DNA of 64,000 nt from Corallochytrium limacisporum Hawaii (taxonomy: Eukaryota > Protista > Pluriformea): NCBI GenBank assembly GCA_002811645.1, contig PDIP01000008.1, positions 110,097-174,096 of the forward strand. The letters run 5' to 3'. Of this stretch, positions 7,242 to 13,336 are shown one piece after another. Position numbers and translations under genes: made by a program. The notes beneath the pieces are model-generated. The model ran no database searches, had not been told where the DNA came from, and was given only the letters and a program-made list of their open reading frames with translations. Each line of letters begins with the position of its first letter. The first letter of the stretch is position 1.

Positions 7242-9503
7242 ATGTTAAGGTCTGGGTCCTCAGCGAGCTTCCAGAAGTTGAGGTCTGGTATTTCAAACGG
7301 TGGGTCGCGAACACATTCGCGGCAAGGTTCTGCTGATATCGGTGGCGCCGCCAATGTCAGGCTGGGCAGCGGACAAACGACCCCACGGGGGGATCGTGCC
7401 TTTAGTAGTCAGCTAGGCTATTCGACTGGGACTGCTTCCCCGCTGGCTTTATCACAGGCACCGCAAAAGCCAACAGAGACGAGAATTGATGGCCTTGGCA
7501 CCCTATCAGGAAACGGACAAGACTGGGACTACATCACACCTGGAAACCAGAATGAGCCAGCCAACTACGATCCGACGGGCAAGTCCAAACACAAAATAGG
7601 GCACAAATTGAAAAGATTTAGGTCTCACAGCACGAGACTCGGAGCAGCCTGGCGCAGGCGCCGGCCGCTCTATATTTTGGCACTTATTGCTGCCATTATG
7701 ATGCTATTATACATTTACTGGGATGAATTCGTAAAAACGACGGAAGCATGGTCATGGGACTACGAGGTAGGGTTTGTTACCTCGGCCCCATCAGGAGACA
7801 AAAGTCCGCATAACACTCAACACTTCCCAGACACAGAATTGCCACAATTTTACGTCATCATCGACGCTGGAAGTAGTGGGAGCCGCATCCACATTTATGA
7901 GGCGACCTATGACGAATCAGGTGAATTGGAGGCCCTAGAAGCGATGCGGATCGGAGACGACAGGGAGATGGCAGTGTTAAAGATTGAACCGGGTCTTAGC
8001 TCGTACAGCCAAACACCAACGGATGCTGTTACCAGTCTCAAGGAACTCATTGACTATGCTGAAAACCTGATTCCAATTACTGATTTGCCAAAGACAAATC
8101 TCTACGTATTGGCGACGGCGGGTCTACGCCTTCTGGACGACAAGACTCGATTGCGCTTGCAAAAAGCAATCGAAGATGAGTTACCACATCAGACTGCAAT
8201 GAAATTGGTAGAGGTGGACACTCTCGACGGACAGTGGGAGGCTGTCTATGCATGGCTAAGCTTCAACTGGATGCAGGGTAAAATTGTCAAGGAATTTGAG
8301 AACAAAAATACTCACAGTCTCCCTGGCCAAAATTTTCCATCAGGACATAAAACGTGGGATGAGATTAGTAGCTTTCCGGTTATTGACATGGGGGGCGCCT
8401 CCGCGCAAATTGCAATGGAAGTACCCGGGTCACCTGGGAAGCTCGACCTGGATGAAAATGATCCCGTTGTCTCACTTCAGCTGAGCTCTGATCATCCAAC
8501 GTACCGCCTCTTCATTCATTCCTACATTCGGTTCGGGGCTAATCAGGCCAGAAAACGTTATCTCAGGTGGCTGCTGGCCAAAGAGTCAGGGAAAGGAAAC
8601 GCCCAAGGAGACGCTGGTTCACGCATTCATGGCGACAGCATTGTTCTCAAGGACCCATGTCTGCACCCCGATCGCAGTGATGATGAGGAAATTGACAAGC
8701 TGAAAGTTAGTGTTGAAGGGACTGGAAACTTCTACCAATGTGCTGAAAATCTGAAGTTTCTCTTTGACAAAACCGCTCCATGTTCTAACAAGCCCTGTGC
8801 ATTCAATGGCGTGCATCAACCCGAGCTCCCATGGGGAACACATGAGATCTTCGGCATCAGCGAGTTCTGGTACACTTCTTGGGATGTATTCCACTTTACA
8901 GGGCCCTATGACGAGGACACATTCGTCAAGGCGGCTGAGGCATGGTGCCTCCGTGACTGGGATGCTCTAGTGGAAGAGTACGATGCTGGTCTTTTCCCAA
9001 CTGCAGGCCGCACTCGTTTCCGTGATCAGTGCTTCAAGTCTGCCTGGATGCACACTTTCTTACACTATGCCTTTGAAATGCCAAAGTCCGCCACCTTCCA
9101 CCCCATTAGCAAGGTCAACGGTGCGGAAGTGTCCTGGACCTTAGGAGCTCTTTTGCACCGCATTTATGACGGGATCACTGAAGCTCCAGTGGATGATGAG
9201 GATGAAGGCGGTGACGCGGAGCAAGAAGTCGCGTTGCAGCGCAAGAAGCAGCAACAACAACAGCAAGAAGGCACAGGAACAACTGATGAACACTTTGCCG
9301 ACGGTCCGGTTCCCCAGTTCCTCGGTCTTGTGTGGTATAATTGGATGGTCGTTTGCACCATCGTAGGCGTTGCCGTCTACATCTGGCGCCGTAGGCAGAG
9401 GAACACCATTAGCCTGCCCACTCACGCTGATGTAAACAACGGTGGCATCAACGGAGACCCATATCGTCAGATCTATGAGCGCGGATCCATGTCCTACATT
9501 TAG
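7242..9503 (+). CDS. GDA1/CD39 nucleoside triphosphate diphosphohydrolase (ENTPD4/7- or Ynd1-like), two TM segments, 753 aa
   Basis: Apyrase conserved regions IIDAGSSGSR, ATAGLR, GQWEAVYAW, DMGGASAQ, WTLG; hydrophobic helices near both ends; RFRDQCFKSAW motif. Confidence 0.92.
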   Translation: MLRSGSSASFQKLRSGISNGGSRTHSRQGSADIGGAANVRLGSGQTTPRGDRAFSSQLGYSTGTASPLALSQAPQKPTETRIDGLGTLSGNGQDWDYITPGNQNEPANYDPTGKSKHKIGHKLKRFRSHSTRLGAAWRRRRPLYILALIAAIMMLLYIYWDEFVKTTEAWSWDYEVGFVTSAPSGDKSPHNTQHFPDTELPQFYVIIDAGSSGSRIHIYEATYDESGELEALEAMRIGDDREMAVLKIEPGLSSYSQTPTDAVTSLKELIDYAENLIPITDLPKTNLYVLATAGLRLLDDKTRLRLQKAIEDELPHQTAMKLVEVDTLDGQWEAVYAWLSFNWMQGKIVKEFENKNTHSLPGQNFPSGHKTWDEISSFPVIDMGGASAQIAMEVPGSPGKLDLDENDPVVSLQLSSDHPTYRLFIHSYIRFGANQARKRYLRWLLAKESGKGNAQGDAGSRIHGDSIVLKDPCLHPDRSDDEEIDKLKVSVEGTGNFYQCAENLKFLFDKTAPCSNKPCAFNGVHQPELPWGTHEIFGISEFWYTSWDVFHFTGPYDEDTFVKAAEAWCLRDWDALVEEYDAGLFPTAGRTRFRDQCFKSAWMHTFLHYAFEMPKSATFHPISKVNGAEVSWTLGALLHRIYDGITEAPVDDEDEGGDAEQEVALQRKKQQQQQQEGTGTTDEHFADGPVPQFLGLVWYNWMVVCTIVGVAVYIWRRRQRNTISLPTHADVNNGGINGDPYRQIYERGSMSYI

Positions 9504-9626
9504 GCAGAAGGTGTTCAACATACATATACTGATACTCTGTGTAGTAGTAATCTCTGGTTTGTCCCTTGCCTGTGAACAGCTGCCCATTGCTTACAGTTTG
9601 GGTTTCGAACTAAGACTGCCAGGGAG

Positions 9627-11309
9627 TCATACGAAAGGTTGAGGCTTGTCGCCCACACCACCAGCAAGCTCATAGGTTTTCAAAGCCACGGTCACAGCAA
9701 GTTCGTCGCACTGCTCCCGGGTCTCGGCTTCTGCGTAAACACGGACGACGTCTTCAGTGCCGGAAGGACGCACGAACGACCGACCCGACGGGTATTTGCG
9801 GACAATCTCGTCGATAGCCTCCTGCAAACCTTCCGGGGTCACAACTGTCTGCTCGGCATTCGTTGTCGTGATGGCGGTGCGATCGGCAACGCGAACCTTC
9901 ATCTGACGATTGGGTAGGTCGTTGTACTTGGAATTCCATTCAGAAAGGGACCATCCTTTCAGGGCCAGGCAGGCCTCGACCAGCAGGATGTCAGACAGAG
10001 CATCACCGACAGTCTCGTTGATGACCCGAACCAGAGCGCTCAGAGTCTTGTAGGCAGTCTTACCCGTATCGTTCAAAGCATTGACGTCGACACCCGCTAG
10101 ACGCTGCTTGGTAGCAGGGCTGAAGATGACTGTACCGTGGCCATTGGCCTCAAAGTACACGCCGACGTCGTGCTTCACTGCCTCGTGGTGAAGGTGCTTA
10201 ACACCCGTAGGAGTGAAAGGGGCCTGCAGTTTCAGTTCCTGGGTAATGTACTTAGTGCTGGAACCGTTTGCGTAAGCAGTCTGCACGACGGCGATTTTTG
10301 TGTCAAGGCCAATGGCAGTGAATAGATCGGTCAGGGCCGTAGCAGCGAGGGTGGCAATCTTATCACCGTCAAGTAGGCAGAATTTTCCATCATCATTGAC
10401 GTAGTAGTAGACCACGCGGTCGGCATCACCGTCCAGGGAGGCGGCGCGGTCACCAGGTTTCAGATCCATACCGGCAGGTGCTTTCTGGCCGACTTTCACG
10501 TAGTCAGCACCGCAGTCGTGGTTCAGCTTACCTGTGGTACCATCGTTGTAGACAGTGATCTCCAGCACTCCCGCCAGCTTTTCTCCAAAGGCTCGGGCCT
10601 TGGGTGCTCCGACACCGTTAGCCGCATCAATCATAAGCTTCTGCGTCTTGTGGGCGGCGGCAGTGACACCCGTGTCCAGTACCTCTTTGTAGGCTGTGCT
10701 GAGCTTGGTGAAATATCCTTCTTCAGTCGGCTCACCATACTCTCCATTAGTGTTCAAGCAACATACGATGTAGTGCAGCTGTGGAGTGGTGACGATTCCA
10801 AGATCCTGCACGGTGCCACCAGTCGCTTCGATGCCAGCGACGCACTTGGCGAGCAGAGCCTCGCCTGAGGGCCGAGTATCGCGACCCACGACGACTAAAG
10901 GCTTCACGGTAGTGTCGACTTTCTGGTCTTCAATGATTGATTTCACTACGGCCTCGACCCCGTCGGCGGAAGCGTTGGCCAGCTGTGTGGCACAGGCTTC
11001 CCAACTGGATTCGAGCATCTCCCCCAAAGGGTCGACAACTTTGACACCATTGTCTTCCTCAGGGTTGTGGCTAGCTGTGATCATTACACCAATACGCTTA
11101 CCACCTTGGGCCTGGGAACGAAGGGCAGCCAGGACACCGATGCGGAACATTGCTGGTGGTAGCTTGTCGGCATGCATGCGGAAACCCGCCGTACCGTACG
11201 TGTACTTGAGACCATCAGGGATGGGATTGTCCACACAACCGGCTTTGATTTTGTCACTCATCTCTTCAGTCAACTTGAGCAGGAGTATTTTATTGTTGGT
11301 ATTGTCCAT
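9627..11309 (-). CDS. PGM3: Phosphoacetylglucosamine mutase (AGM1/PCM1); the ATG at 11261 is an alternative start
   Basis: YGTAGFR; catalytic ITASHNPEEDNG; metal loop DGDADR; YFEANGHG; FVRPSGTEDVVRVYAE. Confidence 0.97.
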   Translation of the reverse strand: MDNTNNKILLLKLTEEMSDKIKAGCVDNPIPDGLKYTYGTAGFRMHADKLPPAMFRIGVLAALRSQAQGGKRIGVMITASHNPEEDNGVKVVDPLGEMLESSWEACATQLANASADGVEAVVKSIIEDQKVDTTVKPLVVVGRDTRPSGEALLAKCVAGIEATGGTVQDLGIVTTPQLHYIVCCLNTNGEYGEPTEEGYFTKLSTAYKEVLDTGVTAAAHKTQKLMIDAANGVGAPKARAFGEKLAGVLEITVYNDGTTGKLNHDCGADYVKVGQKAPAGMDLKPGDRAASLDGDADRVVYYYVNDDGKFCLLDGDKIATLAATALTDLFTAIGLDTKIAVVQTAYANGSSTKYITQELKLQAPFTPTGVKHLHHEAVKHDVGVYFEANGHGTVIFSPATKQRLAGVDVNALNDTGKTAYKTLSALVRVINETVGDALSDILLVEACLALKGWSLSEWNSKYNDLPNRQMKVRVADRTAITTTNAEQTVVTPEGLQEAIDEIVRKYPSGRSFVRPSGTEDVVRVYAEAETREQCDELAVTVALKTYELAGGVGDKPQPFV

Positions 11310-12247
11310 TCATAACGCCAGGTTCTTTTTGTCTGATCTGCCATCAGTCAAGTAACTCTCCACCCACAGCTCTTGTACAATGGAGTTCCCGGACAACCCA
11401 ATGATCGCTGCGTGTCCGGCCCCTTTCGACCGTTTGATCTGATCATTTCCATAGTTGCGGTTCGGTGGTATTTCGCTTACTTTCTTTTTTTTTTGTTTTT
11501 GTTTTTTCTTCTCGGCGCAGAGAGAGGGTTTTGGCAAAAAAAAAATCATTGGCTTTTTAGATTGGCCCCCTCCCATCCCAGAGGAGGGGGGGGTGGGTGG
11601 TACTTGGGCTCTCCGCAGTACTCGGCATACGGCGCGGAAAACAAAAGGGAGCGCGCACGGTTCTATGAGCGGGAAAGAAACAAAAAAAAATACAAGAAAA
11701 AGAGACAACAAAAAAAAAAAAGAGAGAGAGAGAAAAAATTGGGCTTAAGGCGGGGGTGAAGGTGTAGAGATCTAGTCTCCCCCCCCGGGGGGGGGAGGGG
11801 GCCTTGGCTTCTCGCCACAATGGAAAAACCCTTCTTCCCCGACCGGCCGATTTCCTTTTTTCCGGGGTCGGCTTCTTCTTCAGTGGGGACACACTTGCCC
11901 TTACTTTTTTACTGAACGAGGAAAGAAAAACCCGTCCCTGTTCGGACCCTGGTTGGGTAAGGCCCGGTTGAGGAAAGTGGGGGGAGGGGGGGAGCGGGAC
12001 AAGAAAAGCTGGGCCGGGCCAGTGAAAAGGTCTCCCGTCCTCGTCCGACCGTGGTGGGTGGCCGGCACGAAGGGACGGGCAGGTAGACTCTCATGGCTGC
12101 CAATGCTTTCGGGGTGATAGCAGCCGTAAACCACGCTCATGTCAGTAGCAAATTGTATGGAACAGAGATAAATGTGTATGAAATATTGCTGATGATCGAA
12201 AGACGTAAAATCACCAATGGTTTGATAGTATTCCGCATACCCACTAG

Positions 12248-13336
12248 CTACTCCGGAGGATGTGCGTAGTCCATGACCTTGCGATGCAGACGGTGTTGCA
12301 ACCGTTGGCTGCGGTAATATGCACGCAGGAAGTGTTTTACTCCGAAATACAGCAGCCCGCCAACCAAAGTGCGGTGAAATTGTGTCTGAATGCGACCACG
12401 GAAGAGCACGCTGCCTATGGTAGCAGCAATCGTGGGCAACGCGAGCGCTTCAATAATTCCACGGGCGAGAGGGACCCGGTCGTTTGAATCAAGCACCTCT
12501 AGGAGCATCTCTTCGTCCTCATCAGTGATGCCTGCTGCCGCCATGTCCTCCCGAATGACCTCTGCCTGTACCGCCCGTGCGTAAGCGGCATCGTCGGTTC
12601 CGTCCTGTTCACTGGTCTCAAAGTTAGCCTGCTGTACCGTCCCCTGCCGCTGCTGTCTTCCTTGCGCCGCCTGTGCGTCTGCAATGCGAGCAGCAAGATC
12701 ACGTCCACGAGGACGTTGGCGTCGTTGCTGTCGATGGACACCCACAAGCATGACTGGGTGGATGAAGTTGGGAATCACAAGCATGCAAGGAATCATGGGC
12801 AAAGTTGTAAACAGAACTGCGGGATCCATGCGCTGCAAGAGTTCCAGACCCTTTTCCGTACCAATGATCTGGCATATCGCAAAGCCTCCATATGTGACTG
12901 CACTGAGGTACATAGTACTGAACATCATACCAATTGCAGCCAAGGGGCTTAATGCGTTGGCGGCCGCATCCAACACGTCAATAACCTTGACAAGTGCGTC
13001 ATCCTCCGTGCTTTGAATAAGGTACTTTACCTTGCATTGCGGGCAAGATACTGATACGCTAATATTCCCTTCTTGCTTTTCGTCGATCCATCGCTGTATG
13101 CACGCTTGGTGGACCCACCGGGTCGAACCCTTACACAGACATGGCTGTGCCCAAATCTTCCTGGTCTCTCGGCTGCGAGGAATTACCTGCTCCTCACCAA
13201 GACATACCCAGCAGGTCCGTGATTCTGTTGGTTGAAACGCAAAGCGCTGTGCTTCATCGGTCTCCATGTCTGCGTGGTATGCAAATCCTCCGCGTTCGTA
13301 TTCTAGACGTTGTCTCTCCAGCTCAGCTTCGTCCAT
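12248..13336 (-). CDS. MARCHF5: RING-CH E3 ubiquitin ligase, MARCH5/MITOL-like (first ATG at 13336; the ORF-track start at 13375 is TTG)
   Basis: CWVC..PCLCKGSTRWVHQACIQRWIDEKQ..CPQC; four hydrophobic segments; ALALPTIAATIG and RTLVGG as recalled for MARCH5. Confidence 0.9.
   Translation of the reverse strand: MDEAELERQRLEYERGGFAYHADMETDEAQRFAFQPTESRTCWVCLGEEQVIPRSRETRKIWAQPCLCKGSTRWVHQACIQRWIDEKQEGNISVSVSCPQCKVKYLIQSTEDDALVKVIDVLDAAANALSPLAAIGMMFSTMYLSAVTYGGFAICQIIGTEKGLELLQRMDPAVLFTTLPMIPCMLVIPNFIHPVMLVGVHRQQRRQRPRGRDLAARIADAQAAQGRQQRQGTVQQANFETSEQDGTDDAAYARAVQAEVIREDMAAAGITDEDEEMLLEVLDSNDRVPLARGIIEALALPTIAATIGSVLFRGRIQTQFHRTLVGGLLYFGVKHFLRAYYRSQRLQHRLHRKVMDYAHPPE

Follow-up and report, generated by a model that had tools for sequence, protein, structure and literature searches.

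Background

Peroxisomal isoforms of metabolic enzymes can be encoded behind leaky stop codons. Readthrough-derived isoforms at UGA CU(A) have been described for Pgk1, Tpi1, Art1 and Rpe1 of Ustilago maydis, for human LDHB and MDH1, for the IDH of flies and for a pyrophosphatase of worms (PMC4207609; PMC4359377; PMC5133446), and leaky-stop dual targeting is by now established for glycolytic and redox-shuttle enzymes of fungi and animals. In Ustilago and in HeLa cells the core readthrough element consists of UGA and a CU right behind it, an A in the third position acting only as a booster (Stiebler et al., PMC4207609). Readthrough measured in HeLa cells amounts to 0.27% for UGA CUU G, compared with 0.6-2.3% for UGA CUA contexts (Schueren et al., PMC4359377). 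Here we describe a candidate for the same device in AGM1 (PGM3), the phosphoacetylglucosamine mutase gene of Corallochytrium limacisporum Hawaii, a unicellular holozoan of the corallochytrean lineage. The gene lies in a stretch of 64,000 nucleotides, referred to as the window (assembly GCA_002811645.1, contig PDIP01000008.1, positions 110,097 to 174,096 of the forward strand). A leaky UGA-CU stop followed by a cryptic peroxisomal targeting signal of type 1 (PTS1) probably gives rise to a minor peroxisomal isoform of AGM1, a reading we favor mainly because UAP1, the neighbouring enzyme of the pathway, bears the same arrangement in a stronger form.

Peroxisome-like localization of this enzyme has one precedent. 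In Trypanosoma brucei, PAGM, which corresponds to AGM1, was shown experimentally to be both glycosomal and cytosolic (PMC3465800). TbUAP is glycosomal (PMC2414269) and carries an atypical PTS1, -SNM (PMC7909634); all nucleotide-sugar enzymes tested in this organism were glycosomal (PMC7909634). A first examination of the window, made from its letters alone (hereafter the sequence-only reading), had drawn attention to the AGM1 stop codon and had supposed that import of the mutase into peroxisomes was undescribed. The T. brucei protein removes part of that claim. What stands is its restriction to opisthokont peroxisomes, as our literature search found no report of AGM1 in peroxisomes outside kinetoplastids, opisthokonts included. 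Neither AGM1 nor UAP1 has an entry in the supplementary candidate tables of PMC4207609, and the published lists that we searched name neither AGM1 nor a corallochytrean.

Results

A hidden extension behind the AGM1 stop codon

On the minus strand, the end of the AGM1 reading frame and the sequence that follows it read CCT CAA CCT TTC GTA TGA CTC CCT GGC AGT CTT AGT TCG AAA CCC AAA CTG TAA. The direct read from 9629 to 9591 agrees with the sequence-only reading, which had reported LPGSLSSKPKL behind the TGA and then a TAA. That reading had also singled out the gene as the only one in the window with a TGA-C stop and the only one with an extension of PTS1 type, and our own translation past the stops of 21 long non-overlapping open reading frames (ORFs) leads to the same result. 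The stop thus lies in the UGA-CU core context, position +4 being C and position +5 U. The features of the locus are collected in Table 1.

Table 1. Positions, within the window, of the AGM1 stop region, the AGM1 coding sequence and the convergent neighbour
Feature	Position	Strand	Basis or remark
AGM1 annotated stop, TGA	9627..9629	-	sequence read directly
First codon past the TGA, CTC	9624..9626	-	contributes C and U to the UGA-CU core motif for readthrough (PMC4207609, PMC4359377)
In-frame extension LPGSLSSKPKL, 11 codons	9594..9626	-	linker of Gly, Ser and Pro, with Lys at -4 ahead of PKL
PTS1-type tripeptide CCC AAA CTG (Pro-Lys-Leu)	9594..9602	-	function of PKL from literature
Second stop, TAA, immediately past the tripeptide	9591..9593	-	sequence read directly
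AGM1/PGM3 coding sequence	9630..11261	-	544 aa (P0001); Pfam architecture and match to 2DKA
GDA1/CD39 nucleoside phosphatase gene	7242..9503	+	converges on AGM1; stop 123 nt from the AGM1 stop

The tripeptide PKL is listed as a functional PTS1 in human, yeast and Penicillium and is the recurrent PTS1 of the fungal proteins SidF and SidI (PMC3709128). With PKL in place of AKL in HSD17B4, the apparent affinity for PEX5 is still 1.92, compared with 2.54 for AKL, and PKL binds human PEX5 almost like AKL (PMC6770196). PKL is a published PTS1 variant, as had been proposed, with a small loss of affinity relative to AKL. Components of the import pathway are present as well: the genome encodes PEX14, recognised with 56.9 bits, along with three RING peroxins of the Pex2/10/12 type. 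Moreover, an acyl-CoA dehydrogenase-family ORF of 445 aa on the contig of the window, which we number C275 (C275:193914-195251, plus strand), ends in NRSKL, an overt canonical PTS1, and likely encodes a peroxisomal beta-oxidation enzyme. By its gene content, the host appears to possess a PTS1 import system.

Judged by its sequence, AGM1 itself is an intact cytosolic phosphoacetylglucosamine mutase. It forms an uninterrupted, intronless ORF (9627..11309), 560 aa long if the first ATG is taken as the start or 544 aa long as P0001, in a source genome of 24.1 Mb and 286 contigs that has few introns. The protein matches the Candida albicans AGM1 structure, PDB 2DKA, with an E-value of 1.6e-155. It contains PF02878, PF21405, PF21404 (178 bits) and PF00408, corresponding to AMG1_II, AMG1_III and PGM_PMM I/IV, so that the four-domain architecture is complete. 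The TASHNP, DGDADR, EANGHGT and RPSGTED loops, which hold the catalytic serine and the metal, sugar and phosphate sites, align to 2DKA and are invariant in 20 orthologues. The closest matches in the protein collection are animal proteins, with only 54-57% identity. In the AlphaFold model (mean pLDDT, the predicted local distance difference test, of 88) the last helix, at 515-533, is followed by a coil of 11 residues, and the 12 added residues would, on this model, prolong an unstructured C-terminal tail. At the other end of the gene, an in-frame ATG at 11309, 16 codons 5' of the database start, provides an alternative start: 11262-11309 on the minus strand reads MDNTNNKILLLKLTEE-MSDK..., which yields the 560-aa form. 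The 16 additional codons (MDNTNNKILLLKLTEE) are devoid of obvious targeting character.

The next enzyme of the pathway

A search of the genome with the Pfam domain UDPGP returned three genes. One of them, on contig C173, is a 477-aa ORF that matches the mouse and human UDP-N-acetylglucosamine (UDP-GlcNAc) pyrophosphorylase structures with E-values of 4.5e-150 to 9e-148. This is UAP1, which uses the product of AGM1 as its substrate and is the next enzyme of the four-step pathway. The gene stops at TGA CTA CAG, and its in-frame extension LQKGSRGSSTSGNKNTSRL (19 residues, ending NTSRL) is closed by a TAG; the other two UDPGP genes, which are UDP-glucose pyrophosphorylase paralogues, show no such tail. 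In the same genome and at adjoining steps of a pathway, AGM1 and UAP1 thus share a TGA CT stop and, behind it, a linker rich in Gly and Ser that leads over a basic residue to a PTS1, where the next stop follows. UAP1 differs in having the optimal CTA, the canonical SRL and 19 residues, whereas AGM1, with CTC, PKL and 11 residues, is weaker in both elements. By analogy with the contexts measured in human cells, less readthrough is expected at AGM1 (CUC C) than at UAP1 (CUA C). As for GNA1, the step before AGM1, the genome holds 26 GNAT-domain genes.

The pairing carries most of the weight of the argument. Since the chance rate of TGA-CT with a PTS1-like end is ~1.5e-4 per gene, it is very unlikely, as far as these sequences tell, that a pathway of four steps contains both elements in two enzymes that follow each other by chance alone. 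For the AGM1 match to adjoin a gene of canonical form in the pathway by chance, we put the probability at around 1e-4 to 1e-3, with hindsight on meaningful pairs allowed for.

Chance expectation

To what extent would such a tail arise without selection? The window, extended by a further 200 kb of its contig, provided a 264-kb sample in which 108 ORFs reach 150 aa or more. Their stops comprise 39 TGA (36%), five TGA-C and two TGA-CT. Extensions ending in [SAPCG][KRH][LMI] occurred once in frame 0, once in +1 and once in +2, a rate of about 1% in each frame. Simulating 3' flanks with a first-order Markov model, from which we took the chance rate of PTS1-like ends, gave 0.74% for this pattern and 0.31% for the strict form [SAC][KRH][LM], with a median extension of 13 codons. 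The combination of TGA-CT with a PTS1-like end is expected at ~1.5e-4 per gene, that is, in roughly one case per genome of ~7,500 genes, a gene number estimated from ORF density.

Taken alone, the AGM1 tail is within chance; it is non-random only because of the pairing with UAP1 and of the local association with TGA-CT described below. Both reservations of the sequence-only reading, that the context is CTC rather than CTA and that chance was open, are well founded, given the C at +6 and the single chance case expected per genome.

A frame in a random 3' untranslated region (UTR) could end in PKL behind TGA-C without any consequential extended protein being made. This account, which we consider rather unlikely, would explain the roughly one case expected per genome, the equal ~1% rate in off-frame extensions of the 264-kb sample and a length of 11 codons, ordinary beside the simulated median of 13. 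It would, however, be expected to strike a random gene, yet AGM1 sits directly before UAP1, the bearer of the canonical TGA CTA ... SRL, and the sole other TGA-CT gene in 264 kb also ends in -KL.

A second TGA-CT gene on the contig

That other gene is a NAD(P)HX-dehydratase-like gene (NAXD-like, with a Carb_kinase domain) located outside the window, at C275:89387-90511 on the minus strand. It ends in TGA CTA CAT, and its extension LHGSNIGSLRTWQKL is followed by TAA (C275:89339-89389, minus strand). In the 264 kb, an extension ending in [KR][LM] is present in 2/2 TGA-CT genes, AGM1 and the NAXD-like gene, versus 1/106 of the others (Fisher p = 5e-4); as the test was prompted by AGM1, the count with AGM1 left out is 1/1 versus 1/106. 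The NAXD-like extension terminates in QKL, a non-canonical PTS1, and a peroxisomal isoform devoted to NAD(P)HX repair is possible.

The two tails also resemble each other at the nucleotide level. They have in common TGACTNCNTGGCAGT at equal offset and AGTCTTAG in equal codon phase, followed by AAR CTG TAA. The alignment of their inner parts beats 99.1% of shuffles (p about 0.009), and the 15-mer TGACTNCNTGGCAGT has four occurrences in the genome versus one for the reversed control. These common letters could reflect a shared origin, convergent selection on the linker or coincidence.

They also bear on a second alternative, in which readthrough is real and the extension either serves another end, such as a degron or altered oligomerisation or activity, or is neutral noise at a leaky stop. 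We hold this to be very improbable. The sharing of TGACTNCNTGGCAGT and AGTCTTAG could indeed mean a constraint at the nucleotide or linker level unrelated to PTS1, and UGA-CU stops leak whatever sequence comes after them (PMC4207609), but the AGM1, UAP1 and NAXD-like extensions each terminate exactly behind a PTS1 tripeptide that has a basic residue at -4, and the 11 residues of AGM1 contain no other recognisable motif.

A 'stop-L-x-G-S' module, suggested by LPGS in AGM1, LHGS in the NAXD-like gene and LQKGS in UAP1, was considered as a general cassette and rejected: a pattern search returned only these three and one further in-phase site (on contig C259, LSGSPTRL).

Proposed mechanism

From the sequence features, the enzyme identities, the UAP1 pairing and the peroxins, we infer readthrough, import and a possible metabolic role along the following lines. 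The UGA-CU context of the AGM1 stop would make termination inefficient, and in a small share of translation events a near-cognate tRNA would insert Trp, Arg or Cys at the UGA. If UGA CUU in human cells is taken as a guide, that share would lie at a few per thousand, not per cent. The ribosome would then append LPGSLSSKPKL to AGM1, whose new C-terminus would consist of a flexible linker, a basic residue and PKL, and PEX5 would carry the protein into peroxisomes. UAP1 would use the same device in a stronger form (UGA CUA ... SRL). The likely result would be a minor peroxisomal copy of the route GlcNAc-6-P to GlcNAc-1-P to UDP-GlcNAc, beside the main cytosolic pathway.

Evidence from the genome-wide phase test and from relatives

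In-frame and off-frame extensions had been put forward by the sequence-only reading for comparison across the genome. We searched the genome with the pattern TGACTA N{3,33} MRN CTN TRR, which gave 217 matches, and judged phases by eye in 100 listed. Among these 100 of 217, a true stop with [KRH]L and no internal stop is found 10 times in phase versus about 21 times in the other two phases. The comparison therefore yields no in-phase excess of PTS1 among the 100 listed of 217 matches, which is also what the chance explanation would predict; having no ORF context, the test is blind to which TGACTA sites end genes and so has little power.

Several observations weigh against a peroxisomal AGM1 isoform. 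With [SAPCG] required at -3, the same test counts three cases in phase (ARL, AKL and PRL) versus six in the other two phases, again among the 100 listed of 217. AGM1 departs from the optimal consensus UGA CUA G, as +6 is C instead of A and +7 is C instead of G. Of the earlier premise that UGA-C, at best UGA-CUA, is the leakiest context, the UGA-CU part is the published core motif (PMC4207609), while the A at +6 and the G at +7 are missing here, and the suboptimal CUC speaks for chance. A stimulatory RNA structure 3' of the AGM1 stop was sought and none was found (z = +1.9 versus shuffles). GFAT, the first enzyme of the pathway, occupies a 685-aa open frame (C176:26053-28089, minus strand) that ends in the universal VTVE and then TAA GAC, with no extension device; as this TAA-G stop is tight, only distal steps of the pathway could be dual-targeted. 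The peroxin search covered PEX14 and the RING peroxins.

Conservation, the criterion by which published studies of readthrough PTS1 excluded chance (PMC4207609; PMC4359377; PMC5133446), adds to this side of the balance. The protein, assembly and metagenome collections contain no relatives closer than 55-57% identity to AGM1, and the metagenomes none above 55%. A TGA-CT or a PTS1-like extension is found in none of the distant orthologues read, which comprise 4 transcript contigs and about 16 AGM1 loci from metagenomes, and an overt PTS1 in 0/119 animal AGM1 orthologues. The feature is lineage-specific at best, and its absence in distant orthologues is again what chance would give. The minor peroxisomal isoform nevertheless remains the reading we judge likely, on the strength of the pairing with UAP1.

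The pattern search provided two side observations. The 217 forward matches in the genome compare with 397 for the reversed pattern, which suggests a shortage of the forward pattern here, or perhaps of TGACTA within it. In addition, in-phase TGA CTN sites with short open extensions were noted at C13:41931-41975 (minus), C25:157989-158027 (plus), C26:52259-52306 (plus), C35:53155-53193 (plus) and C259:154106-154135 (minus). The ends at these five candidate sites are ARL, AKL, PRL, HRL (LQGSLPDLHRL, resembling the LPGSL... of AGM1) and TRL (LSGSPTRL).

Gene spacing and 3' ends

The second stop lies only 36 nt past the AGM1 TGA, and convergent genes on the contig typically have stop-to-stop gaps of 60-180 nt; because of this usual spacing, a poly(A) site inside those 36 nt seems unlikely. 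Convergent genes in C275:1-264000 are tightly packed, with a median stop-to-stop gap near 136 nt and a minimum of 4 nt, so that 3' UTRs must often overlap the UTR or the coding sequence of the neighbour. AGM1 follows this arrangement: given the distance between its stop and that of the GDA1/CD39 gene, the 3' UTRs of both genes share or overlap the spacer. Elsewhere in the window, an ORF ending at 12248 on the minus strand (region 12137-12250) has the stop TAG CTAG, followed by an open extension of 36 codons, many of them for hydrophobic residues.

Discussion

To our knowledge, the synthesis of UDP-GlcNAc and of nucleotide sugars is considered purely cytosolic outside kinetoplastids. If our reading is true, the AGM1/UAP1 pair extends leaky-stop targeting to nucleotide-sugar synthesis and, Corallochytrium being a unicellular holozoan, shows the UGA-CU/PTS1 device in use across opisthokonts, beyond fungi and animals. 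The sharing of the device by two enzymes turns isolated cases into a pathway-level prediction, and it could reveal a peroxisomal use of GlcNAc phosphates or of UDP-GlcNAc. Corallochytrium is transfectable.

A broader reading would place minor peroxisomal forms of AGM1 and UAP1, made via leaky UGA-CU stops, within a wider readthrough-encoded hidden peroxisomal proteome that includes enzymes of metabolite repair or housekeeping, NAD(P)HX dehydratase among them. This would be an opisthokont parallel to the glycosomal nucleotide-sugar synthesis of trypanosomes, and would date dual targeting by UGA-CU and PTS1 to the split between animals and fungi or earlier. We see the chances of this broader reading as evenly balanced.

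Comparison with known systems

The mechanism proposed here has been described before; what is new, trypanosome glycosomes apart, is the enzyme, the lineage and the pairing of two steps. With the isoforms of Ustilago, human, fly and worm, AGM1 shares a UGA followed by CU, an in-frame extension (about 7-20 residues in these systems) and a PTS1 placed right before the next stop, as well as a parent that is an abundant cytosolic metabolic enzyme and no need for a downstream RNA structure. Those isoforms differ by an A at the third base, a G at +7 and the tripeptides SRL, SKL or CRL, where AGM1 has C, C and PKL, and the C at both positions is why a lower level of readthrough is expected for AGM1. 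They differ also in that conservation excluded chance for them, whereas the AGM1 case is known from one genome.

The trypanosome system, to which PAGM, UAP, GNA and others belong (PMC3465800, PMC7909634, PMC2414269), resembles ours in the enzymes and not in the means. Localization in T. brucei was shown experimentally and readthrough is uninvolved: TbPAGM has no recognisable peroxisomal targeting signal, and TbUAP has its overt -SNM. Trypanosomes belong to a distant lineage (Euglenozoa) and have most or all of the pathway in the organelle, as opposed to the minor share proposed in Corallochytrium. In common are PAGM and UAP in an organelle derived from the peroxisome and, for TbPAGM, a dual organellar and cytosolic distribution of the kind that a leaky stop would also give.

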